Positions 11,201 to 59,730 of a DNA stretch of 64,000 bases are shown here, one piece after another (position 1 is the first letter of the stretch; the number at the start of each line of letters is the position of its first letter). A model generated the notes under the pieces. The model did not search any database. It worked only from the letters and a program-made list of their open reading frames with translations, and had not been told where the DNA came from. Source of the stretch: Phaeosaccion multiseriatum (lineage: Eukaryota; Protista; Ochrophyta, other classes); contig OZ218963.1 of assembly GCA_965112735.1 (NCBI GenBank), forward strand, positions 1-64,000, given 5' to 3'. The translations under genes were made by a program, and so were the position numbers.

Positions 11201-14200
11201 GGCCTCGGACGAAGTGGTTCTCAAGTGGTTCTCGAGTCCTGAGGCCTCGGACGAAGTGGTTCTCCACTGGTTCTCGAGTCCTGAGGCCGCGGACGAAGTG
11301 GTTCTCCACTGGTTCTCGAGTCCTGAGGCCTCGGACGAAGTGGTTCTCAAGTGGTTCTCGGGTCCTGAGGCCTCGGACGAAGTGGTTCTCAAGTGGTTCT
11401 CGAGTCCTGAGGCCGCGGACGAAGTGGTTCTCCACTGGTTCTCGCGTCCTGAGGCCTCGGACGAAGTGGTTCTCAAGTGGTTCTCGAGTCCTGAGGCCCC
11501 GGACGAAGTGGTTCTCCACTGGTTCTCGAGTCCTGAGGCCCCGGACGAAGTGGTTCTCCACTGGTTCTCGCGTCCTGAGGCCTCGGACGAAGTGGTTCTC
11601 AAGTGGTTCTCGAGTCCTGAGGCCGCGGACGAAGTGGTTCTCCACTGGTTCTCGCGTCCTGAGGCCTCGGAAGAAGTGGTTCTCATGTGGTTCTCGGGTC
11701 CTGAGGCCTCGGTGGAAGTGGTTCTCAAGTGGTTCTCGGGTCCTGAGGCCTCGGACGAAGTGGTTCTCAAGTGGTTCTCGAGTCCTGAGGCCGCGGACGA
11801 AGTGGTTCTCCACTGGTTCTCGCGTCCTGAGGCCTCGGACGAAGTGGTTCTCAAGTGGTTCTCGAGTCCTGAGGCCTCGGACGAAGTGGTTCTCCACTGG
11901 TTCTCGAGTCCTGAGGCCTCGGACGAAGTGGTTCTCAAGTGGTTCTCGGGTCCTGAGGCCTCGGACGAAGTGGTTCTCAAGTGGTTCTCGAGTCCTGAGG
12001 CCGCGGACGAAGTGGTTCTCCACTGGTTCTCGCGTCCTGAGGCCTCGGACGAAGTGGTTCTCAAGTGGTTCTCGAGTCCTGAGGCCCCGGACGAAGTGGT
12101 TCTCCACTGGTTCTCGAGTCCTGAGGCCCCGGACGAAGTGGTTCTCCACTGGTTCTCGCGTCCTGAGGCCTCGGACGAAGTGGTTCTCAAGTGGTTCTCG
12201 AGTCCTGAGGCCGCGGACGAAGTGGTTCTCCACTGGTTCTCGCGTCCTGAGGCCTCGGAAGAAGTGGTTCTCCACTGGTTCTCGAGTCCTGAGGCCGCGG
12301 ACGAAGTGTTCCTCCACTGGTTCTCGCGTCCTGAGGCCTCGGACGAAGTGGTTCTCAAGTGGTTCTCGAGTCCTGAGGCCCCGGACGAAGTGGTTCTCCA
12401 CTGGTTCTCGCGTCCTGAGGCCTCGGACGAAGTGGTTCTCCACTGGTTCTCGAGTCCTGAGGCCTCGGACGAAGTGGTTCTCCACTGGTTCTCGCGTCCT
12501 GAGGCCTCGGACGAAGTGGTTCTCCACTGGTTCTCGAGTCCTGAGGCCTCGGTGGAAGTGGTTCTCCACTGGTTCTCGCGTCCTGAGGCCTCGGACGAAG
12601 TGGTTCTCAAGTGGTTCTCGAGTCCTGAGGCCTCGGACGAAGTGGTTCTCCACTGGTTCTCGCGTCCTGAGGCCCCGGACGAAGTGGTTCTCCACTGGTT
12701 CTCGAGTCCTGAGGCCCCGGACGAAGTGGTTCTCCACTGGTTCTCGCGTCCTGAGGCCACGGACGAAGTGGTTCTCCACTGGTTCTCGAGTCCTGAGGCC
12801 TCGGACGAAGTGGTTCTCAAGTGGTTCTCGGGTCCTGAGGCCTCGGACGAAGTGGTTCTCAAGTGGTTCTCGAGTCCTGAGGCCGCGGACGAAGTGGTTC
12901 TCCACTGGTTCTCGCGTCCTGAGGCCTCGGAGGAAGTGGTTCTCAAGTGGTTCTCGAGTCCTGAGGCCTCGGACGAAGTGGTTCTCAAGTGGTTCTCGAG
13001 TCCTGAGGCCGCGGACGAAGTGGTTCTCCACTGGTTCTCGAGTCCTGAGGCCTCGGACGAAGTGGTTCTCCACTGGTTCTCGAGTCCTGAGGCCGCGGAC
13101 GAAGTGTTCCTCCACTGGTTCTCGCGTCCTGAGGCCTCGGACGAAGTGGTTCTCAAGTGGTTCTCGAGTCCTGAGGCCCCGGACGAAGTGGTTCTCCACT
13201 GGTTCTCGCGTCCTGAGGCCTCGGACGAAGTGGTTCTCAAGTGGTTCTCGAGTCCTGAGGCCTCGGACGAAGTGGTTCTCCACTGGTTCTCGCGTCCTGA
13301 GGCCTCGGACGAAGTGGTTCTCAAGTGGTTCTCGAGTCCTGAGGCCGCGGACGAAGTGGTTCTCCACTGGTTCTCGAGTCCTGAGGCCGCGGACGAAGTG
13401 GTTCTCAAGTGGTTCTCGAGTCCTGAGGCCCCGGACGAAGTGGTTCTCCACTGGTTCTCGCGACCTGAGGCCTCGGACGAAGTGGTTCTCAAGTGGTTCT
13501 CGAGTCCTGAGGCCTCGGACGAAGTGGTTCTCCACTGGTTCTCGCGTCCTGAGGCCTCGGACGAAGTGGTTCTCCACTGGTTCTCGAGTCCTGAGGCCTC
13601 GGAGGAAGTGGTTCTCAAGTGGTTCTTGAGTCCTGAGGCCTCGGACGAAGTGGTTCTCAAGTGGTTCTCGGGTCATGAGGCCTCGGACGAAGTGGTTCTC
13701 AAGTGGTTCTCGAGTCCTGAGGCCGCGGACGAAGTGGTGCTCCACTGGTTCTCACGTCCTGAGGCCGCGGACGAAGTGGTTCTTCACTGGTTCTCGCGTC
13801 CTGAGGCCTCGGACGAAGTGGTTCTCAAGTGGCTCTCGAGTCCTGAGGCCTCGGACGAAGTGGTTCTCAAGTGGTTCTCGAGTCCTGAGGCCTCGGACGA
13901 AGTGGTTCTCCACTGGTTCTCGAGTCCTGAGGCCTCGGACGAAGTGATTCTCCACTGGTTCTCGAGTCCTGAGGCCTCGGACGAAGTGGTTCTCAAGTGG
14001 TTCTCGAGTCCTGAGGCCGCGGACGAAGTGGTTCTCCACTGGTTCTCGAGTCCTGAGGCCTCGGACGAAGTGGTTCTCCACTGGTTCTCGAGTCCTGAGG
14101 CCGCGGACGAAGTGTTCCTCCACTGGTTCTCGCGTCCTGAGGCCTCGGACGAAGTGGTTCTCAAGTGGTTCTCGAGTCCTGAGGCCTCGGACGAAGTGGT

Positions 14201-17200
14201 TCTCCACTGGTTCTCGAGTCCTGAGGCCTCGGACGAAGTGGTTCTCCACTGGTTTTCGAGTCCTGAGGCCGCGGACGAAGTGGTTCTTCACTGGTTCTCG
14301 CGTCCTGAGGCCTCGGACGAAGTGGTTCTCAAGTGGTTCTCGAGTCCTGAGGCCTCGGACGAAGTGGTTCTCCACTGGTTCTCGAGTCCTGAGGCCCCGG
14401 ACGAAGTGGTTCTCCACTGGTTCTCGCGTCCTGAGGCCTCGGACGAAGTGGTTCTCAAGTGGTTCTCGAGTCCTGAGGCCGCGGACGAAGTGGTTCTCCA
14501 CTGGTTCTCGCGTCCTGAGGCCTCGGAAGAAGTGGTTCTCATGTGGTTCTCGGGTCCTGAGGCCTCGGTGGAAGTGGTTCTCAAGTGGTTCTCGGGTCCT
14601 GAGGCCTCGGACGAAGTGGTTCTCAAGTGGTTCTCGAGTCCTGAGGCCGCGGACGAAGTGGTTCTCCACTGGTTCTCGCGTCCTGAGGCCTCGGACGAAG
14701 TGGTTCTCAAGTGGTTCTCGAGTCCTGAGGCCTCGGACGAAGTGGTTCTCCACTGGTTCTCGAGTCCTGAGGCCGCGGACGAAGTGGTTCTCCACTGGTT
14801 CTCGAGTCCTGAGGCCTCGGACGAAGTGGTTCTCAAGTGGTTCTCGGGTCCTGAGGCCTCGGACGAAGTGGTTCTCAAGTGGTTCTCGAGTCCTGAGGCC
14901 GCGGACGAAGTGGTTCTCCACTGGTTCTCGCGTCCTGAGGCCTCGGACGAAGTGGTTCTCAAGTGGTTCTCGAGTCCTGAGGCCCCGGACGAAGTGGTTC
15001 TCCACTGGTTCTCGAGTCCTGAGGCCCCGGACGAAGTGGTTCTCCACTGGTTCTCGCGTCCTGAGGCCTCGGACGAAGTGGTTCTCAAGTGGTTCTCGAG
15101 TCCTGAGGCCGCGGACGAAGTGGTTCTCCACTGGTTCTCGCGTCCTGAGGCCTCGGAAGAAGTGGTTCTCATGTGGTTCTCGGGTCCTGAGGCCTCGGTG
15201 GAAGTGGTTCTCAAGTGGTTCTCGGGTCCTGAGGCCTCGGACGAAGTGGTTCTCAAGTGGTTCTCGAGTCCTGAGGCCGCGGACGAAGTGGTTCTCCACT
15301 GGTTCTCGCGTCCTGAGGCCTCGGACGAAGTGGTTCTCAAGTGGTTCTCGAGTCCTGAGGCCTCGGACGAAGTGGTTCTCCACTGGTTCTCGAGTCCTGA
15401 GGCCGCGGACGAAGTGGTTCTCCACTGGTTCTCGAGTCCTGAGGCCTCGGACGAAGTGGTTCTCAAGTGGTTCTCGGGTCCTGAGGCCTCGGACGAAGTG
15501 GTTCTCAAGTGGTTCTCGAGTCCTGAGGCCGCGGACGAAGTGGTTCTCCACTGGTTCTCGCGTCCTGAGGCCTCGGACGAAGTGGTTCTCAAGTGGTTCT
15601 CGAGTCCTGAGGCCCCGGACGAAGTGGTTCTCCACTGGTTCTCGAGTCCTGAGGCCCCGGACGAAGTGGTTCTCCACTGGTTCTCGCGTCCTGAGGCCTC
15701 GGACGAAGTGGTTCTCAAGTGGTTCTCGAGTCCTGAGGCCGCGGACGAAGTGGTTCTCCACTGGTTCTCGCGTCCTGAGGCCTCGGAAGAAGTGGTTCTC
15801 ATGTGGTTCTCGGGTCCTGAGGCCTCGGTGGAAGTGGTTCTCAAGTGGTTCTCGGGTCCTGAGGCCTCGGACGAAGTGGTTCTCAAGTGGTTCTCGAGTC
15901 CTGAGGCCGCGGACGAAGTGGTTCTCCACTGGTTCTCGCGTCCTGAGGCCTCGGACGAAGTGGTTCTCAAGTGGTTCTCGAGTCCTGAGGCCTCGGACGA
16001 AGTGGTTCTCAAGTGGTTCTCGAGTCCTGAGGCCTCGGACGAAGTGGTTCTCCACTGGTTCTCGCGTCCTGAGGCCTCGGACGAAGTGGTTCTCAAGTGG
16101 TTCTCGAGTCTTGAGGCCTCGGACGAAGTGGTTCTCCACTGGTTCTCGCGTCCTGAGGCCTCGGACGAAGTGGTTCTCAAGTGGTTCTCGAGTCCTGAGG
16201 CCTCGGACGAAGTGGTTCTCAACTGCTTCTCGGGTCCTGAGGCCTCGGACGAAGTGGTTCTCAAGTGGTTCTCGAGTCCTGAGGCCTCGGACGAAGTGGT
16301 TCTCAAGTGGTTCTCGAGTCCTGAGGCCTCGGACGAAGTGGTTCTCCACTGGTTCTCGAGTCCTGAGGCCTCGGACGAAGTGGTTCTCCACTGGTTCTCG
16401 AGTCCTGAGGCCGCGGACGAAGTGGTTCTCCACTGGTTCTCGCGTCCTGAGGCCTCGGACGAAGTGGTTCTCCACTGGTTCTCGAGTCCTGAGGCCTCGG
16501 TGGAAGTGGTTCTCCACTGGTTCTCGCGTCCTGAGGCCTCGGACGAAGTGGTTCTCAAGTGGTTCTCGAGTCCTGAGGCCTCGGACGAAGTGGTTCTCCA
16601 CTGGTTCTCGCGTCCTGAGGCCCCGGACGAAGTGGTTCTCCACTGGTTCTCGAGTCCTGAGGCCCCGGACGAAGTGGTTCTCCACTGGTTCTCGCGTCCT
16701 GAGGCCACGGACGAAGTGGTTCTCCACTGGTTCTCGAGTCCTGAGGCCTCGGACGAAGTGGTTCTCAAGTGGTTCTCGGGTCCTGAGGCCTCGGACGAAG
16801 TGGTTCTCAAGTGGTTCTCGAGTCCTGAGGCCGCGGACGAAGTGGTTCTCCACTGGTTCTCGCGTCCTGAGGCCTCGGAGGAAGTGGTTCTCAAGTGGTT
16901 CTCGAGTCCTGAGGCCTCGGACGAAGTGGTTCTCAAGTGGTTCTCGAGTCCTGAGGCCGCGGACGAAGTGGTTCTCCACTGGTTCTCGAGTCCTGAGGCC
17001 TCGGACGAAGTGGTTCTCCACTGGTTCTCGAGTCCTGAGGCCGCGGACGAAGTGTTCCTCCACTGGTTCTCGCGTCCTGAGGCCTCGGACGAAGTGGTTC
17101 TCAAGTGGTTCTCGAGTCCTGAGGCCCCGGACGAAGTGGTTCTCCACTGGTTCTCGCGTCCTGAGGCCTCGGACGAAGTGGTTCTCAAGTGGTTCTCGAG

Positions 17201-20200
17201 TCCTGAGGCCTCGGACGAAGTGGTTCTCCACTGGTTCTCGCGTCCTGAGGCCTCGGACGAAGTGGTTCTCCACTGGTTCTCGAGTCCTGAGGCCTCGGAC
17301 GAAGTGGTTCTCAAGTGGTTCTCGAGTCCTGAGGCCGCGGACGAAGTGGTTCTCCACTGGTTCTCGAGTCCTGAGGCCGCGGACGAAGTGGTTCTCAAGT
17401 GGTTCTCGAGTCCTGAGGCCCCGGACGAAGTGGTTCTCCACTGGTTCTCGCGACCTGAGGCCTCGGACGAAGTGGTTCTCAAGTGGTTCTCGAGTCCTGA
17501 GGCCTCGGACGAAGTGGTTCTCCACTGGTTCTCGCGTCCTGAGGCCTCGGACGAAGTGGTTCTCCACTGGTTCTCGAGTCCTGAGGCCTCGGAGGAAGTG
17601 GTTCTCAAGTGGTTCTTGAGTCCTGAGGCCTCGGACGAAGTGGTTCTCAAGTGGTTCTCGGGTCATGAGGCCTCGGACGAAGTGGTTCTCAAGTGGTTCT
17701 CGAGTCCTGAGGCCGCGGACGAAGTGGTGCTCCACTGGTTCTCACGTCCTGAGGGCGCGGACGAAGTGGTTCTTCACTGGTTCTCGCGTCCTGAGGCCTC
17801 GGACGAAGTGGTTCTCAAGTGGCTCTCGAGTCCTGAGGCCTCGGACGAAGTGGTTCTCAAGTGGTTCTCGAGTCCTGAGGCCTCGGACGAAGTGGTTCTC
17901 CACTGGTTCTCGAGTCCTGAGGCCTCGGACGAAGTGATTCTCCACTGGTTCTCGAGTCCTGAGGCCTCGGACGAAGTGGTTCTCAAGTGGTTCTCGAGTC
18001 CTGAGGCCGCGGACGAAGTGGTTCTCCACTGGTTCTCGAGTCCTGAGGCCTCGGACGAAGTGGTTCTCCACTGGTTCTCGAGTCCTGAGGCCGCGGACGA
18101 AGTGTTCCTCCACTGGTTCTCGCGTCCTGAGGCCTCGGACGAAGTGGTTCTCAAGTGGTTCTCGAGTCCTGAGGCCTCGGACGAAGTGGTTCTCCACTGG
18201 TTCTCGAGTCCTGAGGCCTCGGACGAAGTGGTTCTCCACTGGTTCTCGAGTCCTGAGGCCGCGGACGAAGTGGTTCTTCACTGGTTCTCGCGTCCTGAGG
18301 CCTCGGACGAAGTGGTTCTCAAGTGGTTCTCGAGTCCTGAGGCCTCGGACGAAGTGGTTCTCCACTGGTTCTCGAGTCCTGAGGCCCCGGACGAAGTGGT
18401 TCTCCACTGGTTCTCGCGTCCTGAGGCCTCGGACGAAGTGGTTCTCAAGTGGTTCTCGAGTCCTGAGGCCGCGGACGAAGTGGTTCTCCACTGGTTCTCG
18501 CGTCCTGAGGCCTCGGAAGAAGTGGTTCTCATGTGGTTCTCGGGTCCTGAGGCCTCGGTGGAAGTGGTTCTCAAGTGGTTCTCGGGTCCTGAGGCCTCGG
18601 ACGAAGTGGTTCTCAAGTGGTTCTCGAGTCCTGAGGCCGCGGACGAAGTGGTTCTCCACTGGTTCTCGCGTCCTGAGGCCTCGGACGAAGTGGTTCTCAA
18701 GTGGTTCTCGAGTCCTGAGGCCTCGGACGAAGTGGTTCTCCACTGGTTCTCGAGTCCTGAGGCCGCGGACGAAGTGGTTCTCCACTGGTTCTCGAGTCCT
18801 GAGGCCTCGGACGAAGTGGTTCTCAAGTGGTTCTCGGGTCCTGAGGCCTCGGACGAAGTGGTTCTCAAGTGGTTCTCGAGTCCTGAGGCCGCGGACGAAG
18901 TGGTTCTCCACTGGTTCTCGCGTCCTGAGGCCTCGGACGAAGTGGTTCTCAAGTGGTTCTCGAGTCCTGAGGCCCCGGACGAAGTGGTTCTCCACTGGTT
19001 CTCGAGTCCTGAGGCCCCGGACGAAGTGGTTCTCCACTGGTTCTCGCGTCCTGAGGCCTCGGACGAAGTGGTTCTCAAGTGGTTCTCGAGTCCTGAGGCC
19101 GCGGACGAAGTGGTTCTCCACTGGTTCTCGCGTCCTGAGGCCTCGGAAGAAGTGGTTCTCATGTGGTTCTCGGGTCCTGAGGCCTCGGTGGAAGTGGTTC
19201 TCAAGTGGTTCTCGGGTCCTGAGGCCTCGGACGAAGTGGTTCTCAAGTGGTTCTCGAGTCCTGAGGCCGCGGACGAAGTGGTTCTCCACTGGTTCTCGCG
19301 TCCTGAGGCCTCGGACGAAGTGGTTCTCAAGTGGTTCTCGAGTCCTGAGGCCTCGGACGAAGTGGTTCTCCACTGGTTCTCGAGTCCTGAGGCCGCGGAC
19401 GAAGTGGTTCTCCACTGGTTCTCGAGTCCTGAGGCCTCGGACGAAGTGGTTCTCAAGTGGTTCTCGGGTCCTGAGGCCTCGGACGAAGTGGTTCTCAAGT
19501 GGTTCTCGAGTCCTGAGGCCGCGGACGAAGTGGTTCTCCACTGGTTCTCGCGTCCTGAGGCCTCGGACGAAGTGGTTCTCAAGTGGTTCTCGAGTCCTGA
19601 GGCCCCGGACGAAGTGGTTCTCCACTGGTTCTCGAGTCCTGAGGCCCCGGACGAAGTGGTTCTCCACTGGTTCTCGCGTCCTGAGGCCTCGGACGAAGTG
19701 GTTCTCAAGTGGTTCTCGAGTCCTGAGGCCGCGGACGAAGTGGTTCTCCACTGGTTCTCGCGTCCTGAGGCCTCGGAAGAAGTGGTTCTCATGTGGTTCT
19801 CGGGTCCTGAGGCCTCGGTGGAAGTGGTTCTCAAGTGGTTCTCGGGTCCTGAGGCCTCGGACGAAGTGGTTCTCAAGTGGTTCTCGAGTCCTGAGGCCGC
19901 GGACGAAGTGGTTCTCCACTGGTTCTCGCGTCCTGAGGCCTCGGACGAAGTGGTTCTCAAGTGGTTCTCGAGTCCTGAGGCCTCGGACGAAGTGGTTCTC
20001 AAGTGGTTCTCGAGTCCTGAGGCCTCGGACGAAGTGGTTCTCCACTGGTTCTCGCGTCCTGAGGCCTCGGACGAAGTGGTTCTCAAGTGGTTCTCGAGTC
20101 TTGAGGCCTCGGACGAAGTGGTTCTCCACTGGTTCTCGCGTCCTGAGGCCTCGGACGAAGTGGTTCTCAAGTGGTTCTCGAGTCCTGAGGCCTCGGACGA

Positions 20201-21184
20201 AGTGGTTCTCAACTGCTTCTCGGGTCCTGAGGCCTCGGACGAAGTGGTTCTCAAGTGGTTCTCGAGTCCTGAGGCCTCGGACGAAGTGGTTCTCAAGTGG
20301 TTCTCGAGTCCTGAGGCCTCGGACGAAGTGGTTCTCCACTGGTTCTCGAGTCCTGAGGCCTCGGACGAAGTGGTTCTCCACTGGTTCTCGAGTCCTGAGG
20401 CCGCGGACGAAGTGGTTCTTCACTGGTTCTCGCGTCCTGAGGCCTCGGACGAAGTGGTTCTCAAGTGGTTCTCGAGTCCTGAGGCCTCGGACGAAGTGGT
20501 TCTCAAGTGGTTCTCGAGTCCTGAGGCCTCGGACGAAGTGGTTCTCAAGTGGTTCTCGAGTCCTGAGGCCTCGGACGAAGTGGTTCTCCACTGGTTCTCG
20601 CGTCCTGAGGCCTCGGACGAAGTGGTTCTCCACTGGTTCTCGAGTCCTGAGGCCTCGGACGAAGTGGTTCTCAAGTGGTTCTCGAGTCCTGAGGCCTCGG
20701 ACGAAGTGGTTCTCCACTGGTTCTTGCGTCCTGAGGCCTCGGACGAAGTGGTTCTCAAGTGGTTCTCGAGTCCTGAGGCCTCGGACGAAGTGGTTCTCAA
20801 GTGGTTCTCGAGTCCTGAGGCCTCGGACGAAGTGGTTCTCAAGTGGTTCTCGGGTCATGAGGCCTCGGACGAAGTGGTTCTCAAGTGGTTCTCGAGTCCT
20901 GAGGCCGCGGACGAAGTGGTGCTCCACTGGTTCTCACGTCCTGAGGCCGCGGACGAAGTGGTTCTTCACTGGTTCTCGCGTCCTGAGGCCTCGGACGAAG
21001 TGGTTCTCAAGTGGCTCTCGAGTCCTGAGGCCTCGGACGAAGTGGTTCTCAAGTGGTTCTCGAGTCCTGAGGCCTCGGACGAAGTGGTTCTCCACTGGTT
21101 CTCGAGTCCTGAGGCCTCGGACGAAGTGATTCTCCACTGGTTCTCGAGTCCTGAGGCCTCGGACGAAGTGGTTCTCAAGTGGTT
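8232..21184. repeat. Subtelomeric 42-bp tandem satellite, ~308 copies
   Basis: Consensus GAAGTGGTTCTC(AAG/CAC)TGGTTCTCG(A/C/G)GTCCTGAGGCC(T/G/C)CGGAC. Variation is by substitution only. The array ends abruptly at ...CTCAAGTGGTT|ATACAC. Confidence 0.99.
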
Positions 21185-22395
21185 ATACACGACTGTGTCG
21201 GACTTGTTTGCTTTTCTATCTAGTATGGGGTGTAGCGTATTGAGCCTTGTTTGGTTGCCTCCCCACAGAGTGGCTCGGCAAGGGGGGATCTGGCTGTGGT
21301 GGAGCTGGGGTGGGCTCATTACGTAGTTAAGGGTGGGAACTGGATCCTGGGGAGGCGGTCTCGGGTCTCCCTCACTCCTGAACCCGTATAGACAAAGTGG
21401 AAAGCTTCCTTACCTCAAGGAAGCTTCCAGGGGCTTAGGGTGGGAGAGCTTCAGCCTTAATATATCAGTGTTCTAGTATCACTTCTCGCCCCTCTCTCCT
21501 TATGGTACGGGAACGCCCCGGCCTGCGCTCAGATTGGGGGTATCTTCCTACTCTTAGGCAGAGGGAGGTAGCGGCCCCACAGTGCCATGTCACCACTATC
21601 TACTCAGCACTGAAGTGGCACCAAGGCGTAGTGAGGAGAGCGGAGAGGAGAGTGGAGGGTGGAGTGGAGATAAGGGGGGGAGCATGGGGGCACAGGAGAG
21701 GGATTGGGCTGCTGAAAGGAGGCCGCCTCAGGTGGGTCTCTGTTGACTTCGGTGCACTTTCATGAACGGAGCTCTCAATTATGTATCGCATATAATGTTG
21801 GTGGCCTCTAGACTACCCATCGGAACATGGTACTTTGTCCACACGAACACGCCGTCACTCACTCACTTACTCCCTTCCTACAATGGCATTCGAGAGGTGA
21901 CAGTCCGGTCGCGGCTTGCAAGGCACTGTCCGCTCCCTTCCTCTGCTGTGAGCCCTCCTCTTTCGTTTCGGTTTCAATTTCCTGGCCCTTTGCAAGCCGA
22001 CTGCCAAGCTGAAGAAGCCCAGCCACCTCCTGATGCTAAGGGAGAGAGGGCCATGAAAAGCCATGCGCAGGCAGGGGCCCACGTCTGTGTCTGCCCTTCC
22101 GCACTTCCACGCCCGGGCGGGCCATCTGCGGCCACCATTGCTTCATTATGTTCTTTGCTGTTTGTTTGTATCTCCGTGGTGCCACCGCAGTGTGTTTTGC
22201 TCGCACCGACTGCGGGCATACAGGCAGGCACATTCCCCATTGGAGCCCTCTTTGCTTCTTACTCAGCCAAGGCCTTCTGTCTTGCCCCTGGCGTGTTTGG
22301 CACCCAAGGCAGTCCCTTTGCTTGGCTTACTGGCTGCTCGTGTCGCACATGGCCCTGGACTGCCTCTCATCGCACATGACACCCCACGCTCGCTC

Positions 22396-48911: not shown

Positions 48912-50117
48912 TCTGCCTTGCGATGTACTACGAAGTACTTACTAGCTGGCTACTTGTCGAAAAAAAAAGGAAAAAAAAAAATTCTAGTAGAACCGCCAGC
49001 TTTCAGTTGTGTGAGCACCATAGAACACCATAGAGTTTGTGTGGCGACTCCACTTGGAACCGCTCGGAACCACCGACAGGGTAACAGGGAGCCTCAAGGC
49101 CGACAGGGAGCCTCAAGAAGGCCGTGTCGATCGCGCGCCTTCAACACCTCCTGGTCGTAGTACTCGAGCTAGGCAGGTAGCACCTTCGAGGCAATGACTG
49201 ACTGCAGCCTCGTAGACCCTGTCCTCTTTCCTTAGACTATTCCTTTGCTCCCCCGATCGTCTCACCCGACTAGCAAGCTCTTTGCTCGTCGCAGTCCGCC
49301 CAGCCACTGACTAGCTTCGTCCCCCCCTTGACGTGTTCGATCATCCCGCCGACCCCACTTCGCCCATCCAACAAGTTGCCGCCTCCTTCGCATCCACATG
49401 ACTTGATCCATATCTACAGCACAGCAGCGCGCCGAGCGGCATCTTCAACATCATCAGTGGCTGCACACGTCGACACACGAGGCCAGATGGTGTGCAACGG
49501 AATTGACGAAACGATCATAAGCCACCAAAATCCCTGGGGGGAGCCTATTCCGGGGCTGCTCAAAAAAGGTTGGTGAGGAGAAGAGACGTTAAAGCAGGGA
49601 CTTCCAGCAGTCAGCCAGAGCTGTATAGGCCAGGTGAGGAGGGGGTGGAGGTGGTTCACGTGTTGTTTGTGGGGCTGTTGCGGCCTACGACGCGCTCCTG
49701 CACCCTTCAATTCTTTCTTCACACATGAGCTCTTCTCCCTTTCTTTCATATCCTGCTCCCACCATCGCCCCCGATTCCTCCTTGACGCACACTCCGTCTC
49801 AAGAAGATACCCCATCTCGCTGATTTGAAGTACCACAAGCCCCACAAGCCCTCCTCTCTGCACAGACCACGTAGTTTTCCCCCTTCAACCTCCTCATCCA
49901 ACCACCTTTTACCTTTTCGCCGCTCCTTTCTCACCCTCGCCCCCCCATTCTGCTTGCCTACTGCGTGGCCATACTCTCTACCACTGGACCGTGTCATCCA
50001 CACTCACTCTTCCCCTTTCCCCGTCTCCTTCTCCTTCTCTCTCCCTTGCCCGCCCGTTCTGTTTGCCTCGTGCAGCCTCTCGATCAAAGAGAGCGCGCCG
50101 TCCAGCACAGGGTGAGC

Positions 50118-52973
50118 ATGGCGCCCGCCGCGAGCAAAGCGGTTATGGCCTTGGTCCTAGCGAGGGCTGTCTCGGCATTCCTGGCTCCTCCCCCCCCTCT
50201 GTCCTCTCTTTCGGGCGCACCTTCCTCCATCTCCTCCTCCTCTTCGTCCGCCAGGGCGCCGCAAGCACAAGCGCCAACGGCAGCAACGCGAGGCGAAGGG
50301 GGGAGAATGAGGCTGAGGCCGACACTCGCAGCGCGTTCGCCGTCCATGTCTTCCTCTTCCTCCTCTTCCTCCACCATGCCCAAGGGCAGGAGCAAGAACA
50401 ACCGCCGCTACCGCCGCAACTGGCTGAGCATGATGAGCAGCAGGAGCGACACGAGCGAGAGCGGCAGCAGCGGCGGCGAGAGCGCGGTCCTGGAACCACC
50501 CAAGCAGTCGTCCAACCCCTCGCAGGCCGAGCCAACTCAAGGTCGAGGAGGTAAAGGTCAAGGAGGTCAGTGCCCAGAGGCCGACCTGCTCGCGTCCCAG
50601 GCGGCCACCCTGCGGCAGGAGGCGGCGCTGCTCAACAGCCTGGAGCGCTCTTACAAGATTGACGAGGATCAGCACACCTACCACTACCTGCACACCCTCA
50701 GGCACTTTGAGGGCATGGACATGGAGGCCTACAAAGCAGGTGCGAGGGAAGTGACGTTACACGGCCATGTCCCATCTCTCATCCGCTGGGGGAGGTTGGG
50801 TGGTGGCAACCTCGTTCAGGGTAGAGGGATATGGGCAGGGTGGTGTCACTGCACGCCCTTGTGCATTGCTTCTTCCTTACTTCTTCACCCCCTAACTCCG
50901 TGCACGTTTTCTCCCTCCCTCTCTCCTCCCTCAGACATAGAGATGGAGAACCGCATCACATCCCTGCACCTCAGTGACTCTCCCTACGGCCCCGAGGCGC
51001 TCAGCGTGGCCCAAACCAAGCTCGGACAGGCCGAGAAGCTCTACCGCCAGGCTCTAAAGCAGCGATTGGAGCACCTGCCGGCAGAGCACCCACACCAGGC
51101 CACCTCCTGTTGCAGCCTCGCCGCGGTGCTGCAGGACCAGGGGAAGCTCGACGAGGCAGAGGTGCTGTACAGGGAGGCGCTGGGCATGCGGCTGGAGGGG
51201 GTGCAGCGGGCGGAGGGGAAGGAAGGGCTCGAGGCGGGGGCGGAGGGGAGCTTGGTGGGGGTGGGTGTGGTGAAGAACAACTTGGCGACGCTGCTGAAGG
51301 CACAAGTGGTGAGGAGGTCGGAGGAGCGCAGTCTCGCGGCGAGGGCGGCCAAGCTGGCAGTAGAAGCAGCTGGTGCTACGGCAGGAGGGGAGGGGCGAGA
51401 GGGGAGCGGGGCCGAAGGAGAACAGGAGGAGGAGGAGGAGGAGGAGGTGGTGGACATGGAGGTGCAGTACCGCGCTGCAGACTTCCAGGGCGACTTGAGC
51501 TGCATCACGGAGGCGGAAACCCTCCTCAGGGAGGCGCTCCTTGTCTTTGAGGAGGGCCTTCCTCCCCTGCACCCCTTCTCAGCAGGCGTGTGCCACAACC
51601 TTGCGGCGCTCCTGCAGTTCGACCAAAGCAAGCGCGAGGAGAGGGAGGAGCTGTTGAGAAGGGCGCTGACGATTCGAGAGGCCATGTTGCCTGCCAACCA
51701 TCCGGACACCGCCCACACCCTCGGCAGCCTCGCCACCGTCCGCCTCGAGAGGGGCGACGTGAAGGAAGCTCTGGCGCTCTTTCGACGGGCCACGGAGGTG
51801 CGGGAGGCGTCTCTGCCTGCCAACCACCCGCACCTCGCCATGAGTCACCACATGCTAGGCACGGCGCTGCAGGGAGTGGGGGGCGGGGATGAGGAGGCGG
51901 AGGCGGTGATTAGGAAGGCCATCGCCATTCGGGAGGAGGTGCTGCCTGCCGACCATCAGGACACGGCCCAGTCGTACTGCCTTTTGGGGGCCCTGCTGCC
52001 CAAGATCGGCAAGAGGGACGAGGCCGTCAAGCTGTACCAGAAAGGTCAGAGAACGATGAGCCTTGCAAGCGGGGTTGGCTGCTCGGCATGAAATTCTTAC
52101 CCTCTGCCCGAACGAGCACGAAAGTAACCCCCCTCCCCCTGAATAGTATTCACACTCACACTCTCCCCCCCCCCCTCCCGCCCTCCTCTCCCTCTCTCTC
52201 TTCCCTCAGCCATCGCGATCTACGAGTCTACCCTGCCGTCCAACCACCCCACTCTGGCCATGGCATACTCCAACTTGTCCCTGCTGCTCAAGGCCGAGAA
52301 GGAGCTGGAGGCGGCGTGCGAGCTGTCCGGCAAGGCAGTGGACATTTACACAGAGGTGCTTCCCCCCACTGACTTGCACCTCGGTCGGGCAGTACGCAAC
52401 CACGCGGGCCTGTTGCAGGCCACGGGGCAGCTGGCAGAGGCCAAGGACTACTTCCTCAGGGGCCTGAGCATCAGTCAGGAGATGCTGGATAGGAACCACC
52501 CCAGCCTGGCGGCCGACTATTACACCCTCGGTGACATCATGCTGCAGCTGGGAGAGCCCGAGGAGGCCGAGCCCATGCTGAGGCGCTCCATGGAGATCAG
52601 CGAGGCGTGCCTGCCGCCCAACGACCCCGCGCTGGCCCTGTTGTACAACAACGTCGCCAACCTGTTGAAGCAGCAGGGCCGCCTCGAGAGCGCCAGCATG
52701 CTGTACGGCAAGGCGTTGGTGATCTACGAGCAGGCCCTGCCCGCCAACCACCCCGAGCTGGCCTCTGCGCGCTTCAACTACGCCATCCTGCTGGGCAGTC
52801 AAGGCCGCCTGGAGGACGCGGAGGCGCTGGCCAGGGCGGCCTTTGAGAGCTTCAAGGAGAGCTTGCCCCCCACGCACGAGCACCTGAACCGAGTGAGCAA
52901 GCTGCTGAGCAACCTCCTCAAGGCGCAGGGCAAGGTCAAGGAAGCAGAGGTTTTCTTCATGCGCTCGTCGTGA
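50118..52973 (+). CDS. Kinesin-light-chain-like TPR repeat protein with bipartite plastid-targeting leader (3 exons)
   Basis: Exons 50118-50739, 50935-52044, 52210-52973. Leader MAPAASKAVMALVLARAVSA-FLAP followed by a Ser/Arg-rich transit peptide. Repeated ~42-aa TPR units of the form LPxNHPxxAxxxxNLAxLLxxQGxxxEAxxLYxxAL. Confidence 0.88.
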
Positions 52974-53467: not shown

Positions 53468-56400
53468 TCAGTCCTCGTAATTCTCCCTGTTGAGCTTGCC
53501 CAGCACGGGAATCTTGTTGGGCAGCACCCCCAACAGGGAGGACGCCACCGAGTAAAACACACAGGCCATGAGCAGCCCGAACACGATGTCAGACGCGCCG
53601 CCGCCGACAGTGGCCACGAAGTTTGGGTCAAAGGAGGGGGCAACCACTGAGAAGACGGCACCGAAGATGGAGGGCAGGAACAACGCGATGTCCAGGTTGA
53701 TGGCTGGGGAGGAGGAGGGGAGGGGAAGGGAGGGGAGGGGGCAGAAGGGAGGGGTAGAGGTTCAGTGTTGGGCGGCGGGTGAGAGATGAGGCGCAAGCGG
53801 GGTGGTGGGGGGGCAGAGATGCACATGTGGTGGAGAGGAGATGTTGAGAAAGGGAGAGGAGGGGGACGAAGAAAAAGAGAAAGAGAGAAAAGCGAGAGGA
53901 AGAGAGAAAACCTTGATGTGGGTCTCACTCTCCCTTCCTGCATACACGTCTCTCTCTGCCTGCCCATATGCCTCTCTCTCTCTCTGCCTGCATATACGCC
54001 TCTCTCTGTCTGCCCATACGCCTCTCTCTGCCTGCATATACGCCTCTCTCTGCCTGCCCATACGCCTCTCTCTCTGCCTGCCCATACGCCTCTCTCTGCC
54101 TGCCCATACGCCTCTCTCTCTCTGCCTGCCCATACGCCTCTCTCTCTCTGACAGCCCATACGCCTCTCTCTCTGCCTCCCCTAACCTCTCTCTCTGCCTG
54201 CCCATACGCCTCTCTCTCTGCCTGCCCATACGCCTCTCTCTGCCTGCCCATACGCCTCTCTCTCTGCCTGCCCATACGCCTCTCTCTCTGCCTGCCCATA
54301 CGCCTCTCTCTGCCTGCCCATACGCCTCTCTCTCTGCCTGCCCATACGCCTCTCTCTGCCTGCCCATACGCCTCTCTCTGCCTGCCCATACGCCTTTCTC
54401 TCTCTGTCTGCCCATACGCCTCTCTCTCTGCCTGCCCATACGCCTCTCTCTGCCTGCCCATACGCCTCTCTCTCTGCTGGCTATACGCCTCTTCGTACGT
54501 ACATTGGCGGAGGTTGAAGCGCACGAGTTTGTTTACGGTGGGCTGGTTGGCGATCCATTGGAAGCCGATGCTGCGCAGTCACAATTGCCAATCAAGAGAC
54601 CCAATTAGAAGCCCAAGAGGGGAAAGAACAACAAAAGGGGGGGGTGAGGGGGCGTCCCAATCAACCAAGATGTCCTCAGTGCGGCACAGTGTTGTTCAGG
54701 CGAAAGAGAGAGAGACGCCAAGCCTCGATTGTACAGCGTTGCTCAGACGAGAGAGAGAGGGAGAGAGACAGAGAGAGAGGCCAAGCCTTGATTGCGTCTC
54801 CTCAGCAGGCAGTGAAGAGTTGTGAGACTTTCAAGTATGTAAGCACTGGTGCGAGAGTTCGTCTCACCCCAGGCCCAATCAACAAACTCCCTCTCATCCC
54901 TCTCATCCCCCAATGAGGTGACCCAGACCCACTCATGTGACCCAATCACACGTACAAGAGGAGCAGGCCGCCGAAGGGCACGCTGCGGTAGGCCAGGAAA
55001 GCTCCGAAGAGGGGGGCGGCGATGCCGTTGAACTGCGGGTTGTTGGCCACTGAGCAGGGGGGGGGCAGGGACCAGATGGCAGCGGACGGGAGGCGCAACA
55101 AGGGCATAGCGTCAGCATGCTTCCAGAGGGAGGTAGAGAAGGGTAGAGAACCAACGCCTGTGCCTACACATGTAGATACGTACATACAGCACTGCACCAA
55201 GCACTGCACTAGCCAACATGCCCTACACACTCCACTCGCAACACACTGCCCCTCGACTGCCTTGGGGGCCGCAGCGGAGAGCAGAGCAGAGGCATACGGG
55301 CAGAGCGAGCGCCGCGGCGTGGCCAAGAGTGAGGCCCAAGCACACACACAAAACGCCACTGTTCTGTTCTTTTCTTCCCATAAGCCTCCGCTCTGTGCGT
55401 ATGACTCAGCTCTCATCCTCCTCTGCTGTCTCCTTCCCCATCCCTCGTCCACTGCCATCCCCTGCCCCCTCCCCTTCCTCACCGAAGTGTGTGCCGTAGG
55501 TCAGCCCGTCGAGAAACGGCAGGAGGTACGGCAGCACGCTCAGCACCTTGTCCGACGTCTGCGGGGGGCGGTCGTTGAGCATGCCCGGCTCAGGGGGGGC
55601 AGAGGCGGCCTCGGCCTCGCGAGTGGCAGCCGCAGCCTCCTGAGATCACACCACACCACACCAGTTGGTGATACACCACACAAGCCAGGCACGAGCGGCC
55701 ACGGGGAGTTCAGTTGAGGTTCGTTAGTAGTGAAGTGGCATTGCATTGCGTAGTGCCGTACATTGAGAGCCTATCGAGGCGACAGGGACAAGTCGATACA
55801 TCGACAACACACCATCGGCGCCATCGACACATCATCGACTCTATCGACAGATCATCGACTGTATCGACATATCATCGACTCTATCGACATATCATCGACT
55901 GTATCGACATATCATCCACTCTATCGACATATCGACTCTATCGACATATCATCGACTCTATCGACATCTCATCGACTGTATCGACAAATCATCGACTCTA
56001 TCGACATAATCATCGACTCTATCGACATAATCATCGACTCTATCGACTACTGGTGCAGTATGGTACCTGCAGGGCCTTCCACTCCTTCTGGCGCTCCTCC
56101 CTAAGCTCGTCCTTTTGGCGGGAAAGGATGCGGTCCATGTACATGCGCAAGTCCTGACAACTCGCAAAGACGCGCACGCACACGCACACAGGAGAAGTGA
56201 GTAACGACAACGGAGCCCCTGGCGGGCAGTGCGGCATACAGAGTGAGGCGGGGGGGGGGGGGGAGAGAGACGGGTATACACATGCCGGGACACGGACAAA
56301 GGAGAGACAGAGACAGAGACAGGAGCAGAGACAGAGACAGAGACGAACGCAGAAACAGAGACAGAGACAGAGAAAGAGAGAGAGACGAAGCCAGACAGAG

Positions 56401-57627
56401 ACAGAGGGACAGAGACAGAGACGAAGCCAGACAGAGACAGAGACAGAGAGAGAAATCATGCCAGGGACGCAAGGTCGGAGGTGCTGGGAGGTGCTAGGGG
56501 GACGCTGCAGAGGGCCAAAGAGGGCTGATGCTTGTCTAGGCTCTTGCCCTGATGCTTGTCTAGGCTCTTGCCCCGTGAGGTACGTATCGCAAAGAGCAGA
56601 GGAGTGAAGAAACCGACTCACTCGAAGACCGACTGAATTGAGTCGACCCCCCCCCCCCTCCCAGATAGTAGGCAGAGGAGTGAGAAAAAACACACGCACC
56701 CCTCCCCCCTCACCTGCGTCCTCCGGAACTCTTCCATCTTGAGCACCCCGTCCTTGTCGGCGTCGAACTCCCCCATTAACTCCTTGATCACGTCGTCGGC
56801 GATGCTCACCTACGGTTGCGTAGCAAGTCAATCAATGAGGCCGTCAGTTCGAATGCCGGTTTCAAGCATGGGATGTAGTGATGACGATGGTGATGCTTAC
56901 GTACCTCGCTTTCCTTGAGTTTTGCTTGATCGCCGCCGCGCGTCCTATTGATGGCCCGCACCTTCGCGCGCGCGTCCTTCTCCAAGCCTGCGAGTTGGTT
57001 GTGAGGATATACACAAACATATTGTCATCATCGACAAGAGGGACAAACGTGACTAGAGTATCAAGGGTAAGAAGCAAAGGGCGATCCGAATCCTGATCCG
57101 GGCCCTGATATGACGGCCACATTGACTGCTCTCTGTCTACACGACACAACTCACAGAGCACGTGGGCCGGTCCGTATCATACCTGCTTTGAGCTCCGCGA
57201 GATCGACTACCCCGTCGCCGTTCGTATCGAAGGCCAGAAAGTCCCTCTCTGCCTCCTCCACCTTCTGATTCTTGAGACTGGCCTCAATCCCGAGGGCCTC
57301 CTCCCTCATGGCTTCCGCCTGCAAACGGAATTTCTCTGCTTCTTTCTGAGCCAACTCAAGCTTGCTTGGTCCGCTGCTGCTCTCCACCTCAGCCTCACTA
57401 CTGCTGAGGAAAGTGCTGCGCCGACACCGTTTGCTCCCTGTCGTGCTCCTGCCTACCATCCCACTGCTCGTCTGCGCTATAGCAGCTGTCCTCCCCCCCG
57501 AGATGGATCCTCTTCTACTGAGGAGGCTGCTGGTGGTGGTGCTGGTGCGGACAGAGGGCGCCACGAAGCCCGACACCCCATGCACGAGAGCAAGGCATGC
57601 CATCGCTACAAGCTTCCCCCCCATCAT
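53468..57627 (-). CDS. TIC20: Plastid-targeted Tic20-family (Ycf60-like) inner-envelope protein with N-terminal EF-hand pair (8 exons)
   Basis: Exons 57627-57183, 56987-56905, 56809-56714, 56153-56067, 55639-55483, 55049-54956, 54570-54503, 53703-53468, all in phase. Leader ..VHGVSG-FVAP. EF loops DTNGDGVVDLAE and DADKDGVLKMEE. Tic20 motifs VLSVLPYLLPFLDGLTYG, YRSVPFGGLLLF, NKLVRFNLRQSINLDI, FYSVASSLLGVLPNKIP. Confidence 0.88.
53935..54491. repeat. Intronic minisatellite GCCTGCCCATACGC(CT)n, ~22-28 bp units
   Basis: Direct reading; last intron of the Tic20 gene. Confidence 0.95.
55791..56048. repeat. Intronic ~20-bp minisatellite ATCGACTCTATCGACATATC
   Basis: Direct reading; TCGA-dense. Confidence 0.93.
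56303..56452. repeat. (GAGACA)n intronic repeat
   Basis: Direct reading. Confidence 0.9.
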
Positions 57628-57769
57628 AGTCTTTGGATTGTTATCCTCTTTGATTTTTTTCGCCCCGCGATGCCATGCTGACTAGGCAATCAATATGTCA
57701 ATGAATTACGTAAACCCCCTTACGCTTGAAGAGGAAGAATGAAGTGCGATTTCAAAAAAAGAGCAGACC
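57628..57769. promoter_or_regulatory. Putative compact bidirectional promoter
   Basis: Only 142 bp, comparatively AT-rich, between the divergent start codons at 57627 (-) and 57770 (+). Confidence 0.55.
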
Positions 57770-59730
57770 ATGGACGGATGCAACGGTGCTAAGCGGGGGC
57801 GAGACGAGGTGGAGAAGGGGGAGGAATCCCCAGCTGGGACTGAGGGAGAACAAGTAGAGGAGGCCCCATCGTGCAAAAAGACCAAAGGTGAGTTTAAGCT
57901 GAGTTTTTCTTTTCCCTCTTTTCCTCTCTCTCCCCCTCTTCTGATGTCTTTCACCTCTTCTTTCTCTCATCCCATTCCCGTACTCCTGCTCCGTCCTCCC
58001 CCGACCCCCTCCTGTATCCAGCTGAAGGCGAGCGACTGAGGGGGGAGGAGGGCGCGGCGCTGGAGCTTGCTGGCCTGGAGCCCTACGTCGGCCAGCGTGT
58101 CGAGGTGCTGTGGGATGTGGAGAACTGTGGCAAGAAGACCATGGTGCGTGCCGCAATACTGTACTTTGACGCCCACAGAAGAGCAGGAGGGGGGCACGCG
58201 AGTACAGTAGCACTCACAGGGGGGGCTGGGGCGGCGAGCAAACACCTTGCCCTGCTCTCGCGGTTCGGAGAGGGGCCTTGGCTACTTCTAGAACTCATCT
58301 CTCCCCCTCTCTCCACCCTGTATGCCTGTCTGCGTCAGTATCCTCTCCGCTCCAGCGCCAAATCACCCCTCTCTGACCTCTCCTCTGTGTGGCTCTCTCT
58401 CTCAGTGGTGGGGCGCCTCCGTGGGGCTCTTCGCTGGTGACTCTGAGTACCCCGCAGCGCGCACCACGGATGGTAGCGGACAAGTCATCTTCTCTCTGGA
58501 GTACGACGAGAAGGACGGCAACCCCCCAACCTCCACGAGGTGAGTTCCTGTTTCAGTTTCAGTTTCAGTGTAAAGGCCATACTAAGAGGCCACACTCACA
58601 CCTTCCCTCCAAGTCTCAGAGTCTCACCCACCCGTGCGCGTGTGTGTATATGTGTGCGAACTGTTGCCCCCCCCCCTTCCGGCCCCTCAGAGTGGTGTTT
58701 GTGGACGCGCTGCACCTGCTGGACCTGGACTACTCCGCCGAGCTGTCCTGGAAGAAGGAGGGGGCATCAGAGGAGCTGCACAGGGAGGCCATCAAGAGGT
58801 ATATGGGGGATCGCAGGGTTGGCACTGGATGGGGGGTGGCTGGCAGTGGATGGGGGCATCAAGACTTCGCAGGATGGGCATTGTGGGTGTTTTCGTCGCG
58901 GCGTGAAGAAGAGAAGAGAGTTGCCCACCTCCGGTTCCTGGCGGCGACATGCCTCTGACCAGCCTCTACCGTCCCCTCCCTCGTCCACTGCCATTTTCTG
59001 CCTCTATCTGCCATCCCCTCCCCCATCCACTGCCATCCTCAGCTGCCTGGCGGACGAGAGCTCCCTGACCATCGGGGAGGTTCACGAGGCTCTGCAGGAG
59101 GGAGGGGCGGATGAGGAGCTCGAACGGCAGGGAGAGGAGGAGCTGCAAGCCATGCCCTACGCCCAGCAGGTATATGGACATAAGACGTACAGGCATATGG
59201 GCCGTGTATGGGCCATCAGAGGGGGCCGTGTGAATCGCTGCAGGAGCCGTCTGTGTGACGCCTCTCCCACGCGCTCAGTCTTCCTCACACTCCTCTCACT
59301 CGCTCAGTCTGCCTCGCCCCTCTCCCACTCACTCCAGGGCCGGCTCCTGGCAGTCCCGTTTCCTCCTCCTCCTCCGCTCGCTCCAAAGCTGGGTCGCATG
59401 TCTCCTCACGCCCTCCTCCGCTCCTCCCTCCTCCCTCCTTCCTCCTCGGCAGTTGGCCCTCCGGACTGGCTTCCGTCAGTTCGCCAACACAGTCAAATCC
59501 AAACTGATGGAGGTCGCTCGCGGAGGCACAGAGGTGAGCGAGAGAAAAATAGACGGTGGGAAAGGGGGAGAATGGAGCTACTTACAAAAGGGAGATGGCA
59601 GTAGCGCGGGAGGAGAGCAGGACTCACTCTGATTGCAATCCAATCCACGCACGCACGCAAACACACACAGATCACAGAGGGCGATATCAAGTCCATCATG
59701 GAGCACGTAAAACAACAGCGCGCGGTTTGA
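57770..59730 (+). CDS. Hypothetical protein with Tudor/Agenet-like segment (7 exons)
   Basis: Exons 57770-57887, 58022-58143, 58406-58539, 58691-58798, 59043-59169, 59453-59533, 59671-59730, all in phase. VGQRVEVLW..WWGASV..FSLEYDE resembles a Tudor-like beta-barrel. Basic NLS-like AKRGR..KKTK at the N-terminus. Confidence 0.72.

Follow-up and report, generated by a model that had tools for sequence, protein, structure and literature searches.

A divergent EF-hand–Tic20 fusion gene predicted in Phaeosaccion multiseriatum

The first 64,000 nucleotides of contig OZ218963.1 of the ochrophyte Phaeosaccion multiseriatum (assembly GCA_965112735.1, positions 1 to 64,000, forward strand; hereafter the window) contain a minus-strand gene whose predicted product joins a plastid-targeting leader, a coiled coil, two EF-hands and a charged helix to a membrane domain of the Tic20 type. 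This gene is very probably an orthologue of the ochrophyte EF-hand–Tic20 chimera, of which SjTic20-14 of Saccharina japonica is the type protein. The best overall explanation, to which we assign a probability of roughly 85%, is that the window encodes a protein of this published kind, with a bipartite leader, a Tic20 domain in the innermost plastid membrane and an EF-hand arm in the stroma. The fusion and its Ca2+-import hypothesis are already in the literature (2016–2019). What appears to be new here is only a divergent orthologue, with a shorter insert between its EF-hands and a lysine in its second EF loop.

A single reading frame predicted to join an EF-hand pair to Tic20

We rebuilt the gene from the raw sequence and the list of open reading frames (ORFs). 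It fills positions 57627 to 53468 of the minus strand, with the first ATG at 57627 and a TGA stop at 53468–53470, exactly the two ends of the interval picked out in the initial annotation of this DNA. The coding sequence has eight exons and 1,266 nt and encodes 421 amino acids (aa) without any internal stop. All seven introns (95–799 nt) are of the GT..AG type, and their phases are consistent. The view that leader, coiled coil, EF-hand pair, charged helix and Tic20 domain belong to one phase-consistent open frame was therefore upheld.

All features of the gene given below lie on the minus strand. Exon 1 (57627–57183) encodes aa 1–148 plus one nucleotide and holds the leader, the coiled coil and EF loop 1. 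It is followed by exon 2 (56987–56905; 83 nt, aa 149–176), which encodes the insert between the EF-hands, and by exon 3 (56809–56714; aa 177–208), which carries EF-hand 2. Exon 4 (56153–56067; aa 209–237) encodes a charged helix extending the exit helix of EF-hand 2, and exon 5 (55639–55483; aa 238–289) the end of this helix, a Pro-rich linker (APPEPGMLNDRPP) and the beginning of the Tic20 domain, with transmembrane helix 1 (TM1) and the motif LPYLLPFLDG. The remainder of the Tic20 domain is split between exon 6 (55049–54956; aa 290–320), with most of TM2, exon 7 (54570–54503; aa 321–343), with the conserved motif NKLVRFNLRQ, and exon 8 (53703–53468; aa 344–421 and the TGA), with TM3, TM4 and a C-terminal NRENYED tail.

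Five orthologous proteins aligned to the window with tblastn gave colinear minus-strand matches that end at the modelled splice sites. Exon 1 matches stopped at 57178, exon 5 was matched at 55618–55487 with 52–60% identity to the orthologues, and exon 7 at 54569–54504 with 72% identity to one of the relatives (P0008). The same five queries found no second EF-hand–Tic20 copy in the 64 kb window. When the spliced protein was aligned to its relatives with MAFFT, it was colinear with them, and six of the seven exon junctions were free of gaps; a one-residue gap lies beside the fourth. No separate leader is encoded in the Tic20 exons, where the first Met (aa 257) immediately precedes TM1; a transcript made up of these exons would thus not be directed to the plastid. 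Phase-consistent splicing, colinear homology and leaderless Tic20 exons together are the basis of the EF-hand–Tic20 fusion predicted for the Phaeosaccion gene.

The leader, assigned by inspection, is bipartite. A hydrophobic signal peptide (57568–57627; aa 1–20, Kyte-Doolittle maximum 1.91) ends at a cleavage site between VSG and FVAP, which puts Phe at +1, and the motif xxA/G followed by FV is also present in orthologues. The transit peptide (57397–57567; aa 21–77) contains 15 Ser, nine Thr and eight Arg, with nine Arg or Lys in all and no Asp or Glu. Such a leader should carry the precursor across four plastid membranes. Downstream lies the coiled coil (57238–57378; about aa 84–130), a charged helix with a heptad-like pattern.

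Conserved EF loops and a variant lysine

The two EF loops, DTNGDGVVDLAE (57193–57228; aa 134–145) and DADKDGVLKMEE (56729–56764; aa 192–203), are 58 residues apart. Loop 1, which is followed by Leu, satisfies a strict pattern of the PROSITE PS00018 type. Loop 2 is canonical at positions 1, 3, 5, 6 and 12 and has Lys at position 9, which the strict pattern excludes. The description of both loops as canonical thus stands for the first and fails for the second. At this position nearly all relatives have Gln, in contrast to the Lys of the Phaeosaccion copy. Pfam scans of the window protein, which were run on single exon pieces, gave EF-hand_5 for exon 1 (E 1.8e-5) and EF-hand_1 for exon 3 (E 3.9e-5; 23.3 bits against a cut-off of 25.4). 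A protein atlas search with exon 1 returned generic EF-hand clusters only, with scores below 0.9.

Comparison with the family showed that the residues expected to bind metal are retained. Of the 35 relatives with 320 aa or more, 34 retain the ligand residues of both loops: Asp at position 1, Asp, Asn or Ser at 3 and at 5, and Glu or, in rare cases, Asp at 12. All loops but one have Gly at position 6. The loops of the window protein align column for column with those of the 34 relatives. Orthologue P0028 of Laminaria digitata has its loops at 113–124 and 180–191, which is the numbering published for SjTic20-14, and the relatives collected here therefore correspond to the published family. D113, D180, D184, G185 and E191 are invariant in an alignment of 29 sequences. 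The conserved ligand positions argue for metal binding having been kept across the family; conservation of the loop residues in orthologues, on which the initial annotation had staked its calcium reading, was borne out by the 34 of 35 long relatives.

The spacing between the loops is far more variable. Between the EF-hands, some 30 additional residues are present in brown algae and Chrysoparadoxa, about 21 in the window protein, and none in the dinoflagellate and several other proteins. Exon 2 coincides almost exactly with this lineage-specific insert, which is nine residues shorter in the window protein than in brown algae.

A four-helix membrane domain of the Tic20 type

The charged helix that follows EF loop 2 (aa 204–250) leads to the Pro-rich linker and then to the Tic20-type domain (aa 263–421), which has four hydrophobic spans. 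Three of them, at aa 302–325, 343–370 and 371–406, are clear, and TM1, around aa 268–287, is weaker. The four transmembrane helices that define Tic20 are thus present, and the model of the Laminaria orthologue has matching helices. Exon 5 as a single piece scored 15.6 bits (E 0.014) against TIC20 (PF16166), for which the gathering cut-off is 28.6. Seven of the eight full-length relatives scanned with the same model reached 33–54 bits; the eighth, P0020, had 28.0. Membership of the window protein in Tic20 accordingly rests on transitive homology and on the fold of the orthologue. Arg, Asn and Gln of the NKLVRFNLRQ motif are invariant in the family.

As a stand-in for the window protein, we modelled the Laminaria orthologue P0028 with AlphaFold2 (AF2) using the family alignment. 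The model had a mean predicted local distance difference test score (pLDDT) of 82 and a predicted template-modelling score (pTM) of 0.49, a value too low for arm and membrane domain to be positioned reliably against each other. A long helix (residues 67–112) leads into EF-hand 1 and is followed by a helical insert. The exit helix of EF-hand 2 runs on as a 40-residue helix (195–235), the counterpart of the exon 4 stretch, after which a linker at 236–240 has pLDDT below 50. The membrane domain (250–405) is confident and helical. A Foldseek search of the Protein Data Bank (PDB) with this model placed 7xzi_B, 7vcf_W and 8z9y_B first (template-modelling score by target 0.64–0.70) and calmodulins next. 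By sequence, the only solved relatives without EF-hands were Chlamydomonas Tic20 chains, at E 0.04.

The three best structural matches are Tic20 chains from cryo-EM structures, of the TOC-TIC complex of Chlamydomonas (7xzi_B, 7vcf_W) and of the TIC complex of Arabidopsis (8z9y_B), which share with the family the four-helix membrane domain and the motifs before TM1 and around TM3. In contrast, Tic20 of green and cyanobacterial lineages has no EF-hand module, and the similarity of the green sequences to the family is weak. Green Tic20 works together with Tic214/Ycf1, Tic100 and Tic56, partners that are not known to occur in ochrophytes.

Relation to the published ochrophyte family

A phmmer search with exon 8 against 1.84 billion cluster representatives gave 23 matches (best 2.7e-11), all of them C-termini of the Tic20 type; the full-length ones have 388–430 aa and were aligned at their C-termini. 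No relative more than 50% identical over this last exon was found among the 1.84 billion representatives. Seven of the ten matches scanned scored above the Pfam thresholds for TIC20 as well as for an EF-hand model. Against a small local database, aa 33–418 of the window protein aligned with residues 6–402 of P0028 in a single blastp match over both domains (37% identity, E 2e-74).

The named relatives comprise many brown algae, Chrysoparadoxa australica and the dinoflagellate Polarella glacialis. Word searches with relatives P0008 and P0001, in which EF-hand words saturated the candidate list, returned mostly brown algal proteins and none from the genome studied here. Brown algae have several copies per genome. 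Several relatives of 394–415 aa sit on contigs of 1.27–1.31 kb, a size that only intron-free transcripts can have. In a maximum-likelihood tree of 30 full-length proteins, Chrysoparadoxa, the brown algae and the window protein group together (support 98/94). The brown algae form a clade of their own (98/98), which does not include the window protein; the latter is on a long branch of 1.41. This placement fits the layout of the region between the EF-hands.

The family has been described before. Dorrell et al. (2017, PMC5462543) report an EF-hand–Tic20 chimera in ochrophytes and credit it to Méheust et al. (2016), whose finding we give as cited there. Chen et al. (2019, PMC6720183) characterized SjTic20-14, a protein of 413 aa with a bipartite leader and four transmembrane helices, an EF-hand domain at 105–193 and ligands at 113, 115, 117, 124, 180, 182, 184 and 191. 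Its cDNA was confirmed by 5' and 3' rapid amplification of cDNA ends (RACE). Self-assembling split green fluorescent protein (split-GFP) in Phaeodactylum located SjTic20-14 to the innermost plastid membrane, with both termini inside (N-in/C-in) and the whole EF-hand domain in the stroma (PMC6720183). The authors propose Ca2+-modulated translocon activity or import and report the same fusion in stramenopiles and dinoflagellates (PMC6720183). They further describe 14 tandem Tic20 candidates in Saccharina (Chen et al. 2019) and two clades of stramenopile Tic20s, with SjTic20 apart from the clade of rhodophytes, haptophytes and alveolates (PMC6720183).

These reports bear on several claims of the initial annotation. 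Its suggestion that similar fusions may exist in other ochrophytes is borne out by earlier work (Dorrell et al. 2017, who also cite Méheust et al. 2016; Chen et al. 2019), and its statement that plant Tic20 lacks EF-hands agrees with what Chen et al. say of higher plants (PMC6720183). Its remark that no functional description was known does not hold, as cDNA, localization, topology and a Ca2+ hypothesis had been published (PMC6720183); the split-GFP topology test that it called for had thereby been carried out on a relative. The architecture it described is sound, and so is its idea that the innermost-membrane Tic20 carries its own calcium sensor: the fusion and the loop residues are conserved, and the EF-hand domain of SjTic20-14 is stromal.

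Side by side, the window protein and SjTic20-14 have the same order of parts, from signal peptide and transit peptide through coiled coil, two EF loops and charged helix to a four-helix Tic20 domain. They are of similar length (421 and 413 aa) and fall into the same clade of the tree. The window protein differs from proteins of the SjTic20-14 type in being only 36–40% identical to them, in its long branch, in its shorter inter-EF insert and in the Lys of loop 2, where Gln is near-invariant. There is one copy in the window, in contrast to the tandem arrays reported in kelp.

Proposed calcium control of import and alternative explanations

Taken together, these data are compatible with a model in which the four-helix Tic20 domain would sit in the innermost plastid membrane, its two ends facing the stroma, as suggested by the family. 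Coiled coil, EF-hand pair and charged helix would then lie on the stromal face, where split-GFP found them for SjTic20-14. The EF-hand pair might bind stromal Ca2+, and the N-terminal helical arm could then pack differently against stromal partners or the Tic20 domain itself; import through the Tic20-family channel would in this way follow stromal Ca2+. We consider Ca2+-dependent regulation of import a tentative proposal, somewhat short of even odds. Import that is "directly Ca2+-gated" is a hypothesis, both here and in the literature. That the two EF-hands genuinely switch the ochrophyte inner-membrane translocon in response to stromal Ca2+ is rather doubtful; if they do, the Lys of loop 2 may have retuned or silenced one site and left a single-site sensor. 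If such a switch exists, import into complex plastids would be tied directly to stromal Ca2+ transients, as in light–dark shifts or stress. Regulation of import into four-membrane plastids is poorly understood, and a Tic20 with its own putative calcium sensor offers one of the few tangible ways to approach it. The hypothesis itself has been published (Chen et al. 2019), and it is the demonstration of the switch that would be new; the Phaeosaccion copy could serve as a natural variant in Ca2+-binding tests.

Two known systems offer partial parallels. In plants, calcium acts on the import step at the inner envelope, the analogy drawn in the initial annotation, and the sensor of the translocon at the inner envelope (TIC) is a separate calmodulin that binds the accessory dehydrogenase Tic32. 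In the window protein, by contrast, the putative sensor shares one chain with the Tic20 domain. The Ca2+-regulated mitochondrial carrier SCaMC-1/APC (PDB 4zcu, 4n5x) likewise has an N-terminal EF-hand domain fused to a transport domain of an organelle inner membrane, and the family profile matches its EF domain (E 3.5e-10) as well as the EF domains of neuronal calcium sensors. The membrane domains are unrelated, however, and SCaMC has four EF-hands that face the intermembrane space, whereas the two considered here would face the stroma. As an organelle transporter with an attached EF-hand domain, SCaMC-1 is nonetheless a useful functional analogy.

Several observations weigh against the favoured explanation or its calcium part. 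The branch leading to the window protein is long, loop 2 departs from the strict pattern, and both EF Pfam matches lie just below their gathering scores; these scores, like that of TIC20, fall under the cut-offs because single exons were scanned. A Pro-rich linker, which the Laminaria model predicts with low confidence, stands between the charged helix and TM1, so that direct mechanical coupling of sensor and pore is not evident. The literature searched contained no Ca2+-binding or import assay for any family member. No RNA run with the locus was found: the four runs that cover it, all from one study, yielded DNA-type contigs that span the introns, with no splice joints and only repeat-related joints. 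Finally, given the two-clade tree of Chen et al. (2019), the main import channel may be a different protein from those of the SjTic20 type.

The gap in RNA evidence would suit a gene-model artefact, in which adjoining EF-hand and Tic20 genes have been wrongly joined by in-silico splicing, and intron 4, between the two halves, has 427 nt and contains a minisatellite. Nonetheless, the frame is open through every junction, the alignment with orthologues is colinear, a start codon followed by a leader is absent from the Tic20 half, several relatives (394–415 aa) are encoded on intron-free contigs, and SjTic20-14 was confirmed by RACE at both ends (PMC6720183); we regard such an artefact as extremely improbable. 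The remaining points concern what the protein does. The stromal coiled coil and EF-hand pair could work without Ca2+, as a fixed structural or docking arm to which stromal chaperones, motor components or other TIC subunits are recruited, and so replace partners that ochrophytes lack, with no calcium gating at all. The Lys of loop 2, the lack of Ca2+-binding reports in the literature searched and a linker whose flexibility would uncouple the arm from TM1 are all in keeping with this, as is the inter-hand region, in which family members have anything between 0 and about 30 additional residues; a tuned sensor would not usually vary so much. However, purely structural EF-hands usually lose their ligand positions, whereas brown algae, Chrysoparadoxa, dinoflagellates and other lineages retain D1, D/N/S3, D/N/S5, Gly6 and E12 in the two loops. 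We regard a docking function without calcium as a minority possibility.

A different alternative accepts a role for calcium and questions the channel. Here, the protein would be a Tic20-family paralogue beside an EF-less Tic20 encoded elsewhere in the genome, and would either conduct or carry ions or small solutes under Ca2+ control or serve as a specialized import route. The position of SjTic20 apart from the other stramenopile clade (PMC6720183), the 14 tandem candidates in Saccharina, the several copies per brown algal genome and the weak similarity to Chlamydomonas Tic20 (E 0.04) are all consistent with this idea. On the other hand, the predicted fold of the Laminaria orthologue best matches Tic20 of solved TIC complexes, and we consider the paralogue explanation unlikely. 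An orthologue of the published chimera, with its Tic20 domain in the innermost membrane and a stromal EF-hand arm, is the explanation we retain.

Tandem repeats and neighbouring genes

Three introns of the gene contain tandem repeats. A non-coding minisatellite in intron 7 (53928–54492) has a period of 22–24 or 46 and about 24 copies, another non-coding one in intron 4 (55823–56047) has a period of 20 and about 11 copies, and intron 3 carries an (AGAGAC)n array (56303–56453). The read contigs break at these three arrays. An Rfam scan of the window gave no match.

The gene is flanked on both sides. A convergent plus-strand neighbour (about 49965–52973) encodes a TPR_10/TPR_12 repeat protein of the NPHP3 or kinesin-light-chain type. 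In this protein, an internal Met is followed by MAPAASKAVMALVLARAVSA and then FLAPPPP, a signal-peptide-like stretch in which AVSA precedes FLAP, resembling the ASAFAP motif; judged by this feature, the TPR protein may be plastid-directed. On the other side, a divergent plus-strand gene has its ATG at 57770 (MDGCNGAKRGRDEVEKGEE...), about 140 nt from the Tic20 start codon at 57627, and the region in between (57628–57770) looks like a shared bidirectional promoter. Elsewhere in the window, positions 8232–21326 of the plus strand form a single open frame of 4,364 aa, with antisense ORFs of about 1,000–1,300 aa in a 3.5–4 kb register. Its first 1,300 aa gave odd Pfam matches in many tiny stretches (DUF3696, BAH, GH38 C-terminal), which points to either a giant protein of highly repetitive sequence or a large tandem repeat.

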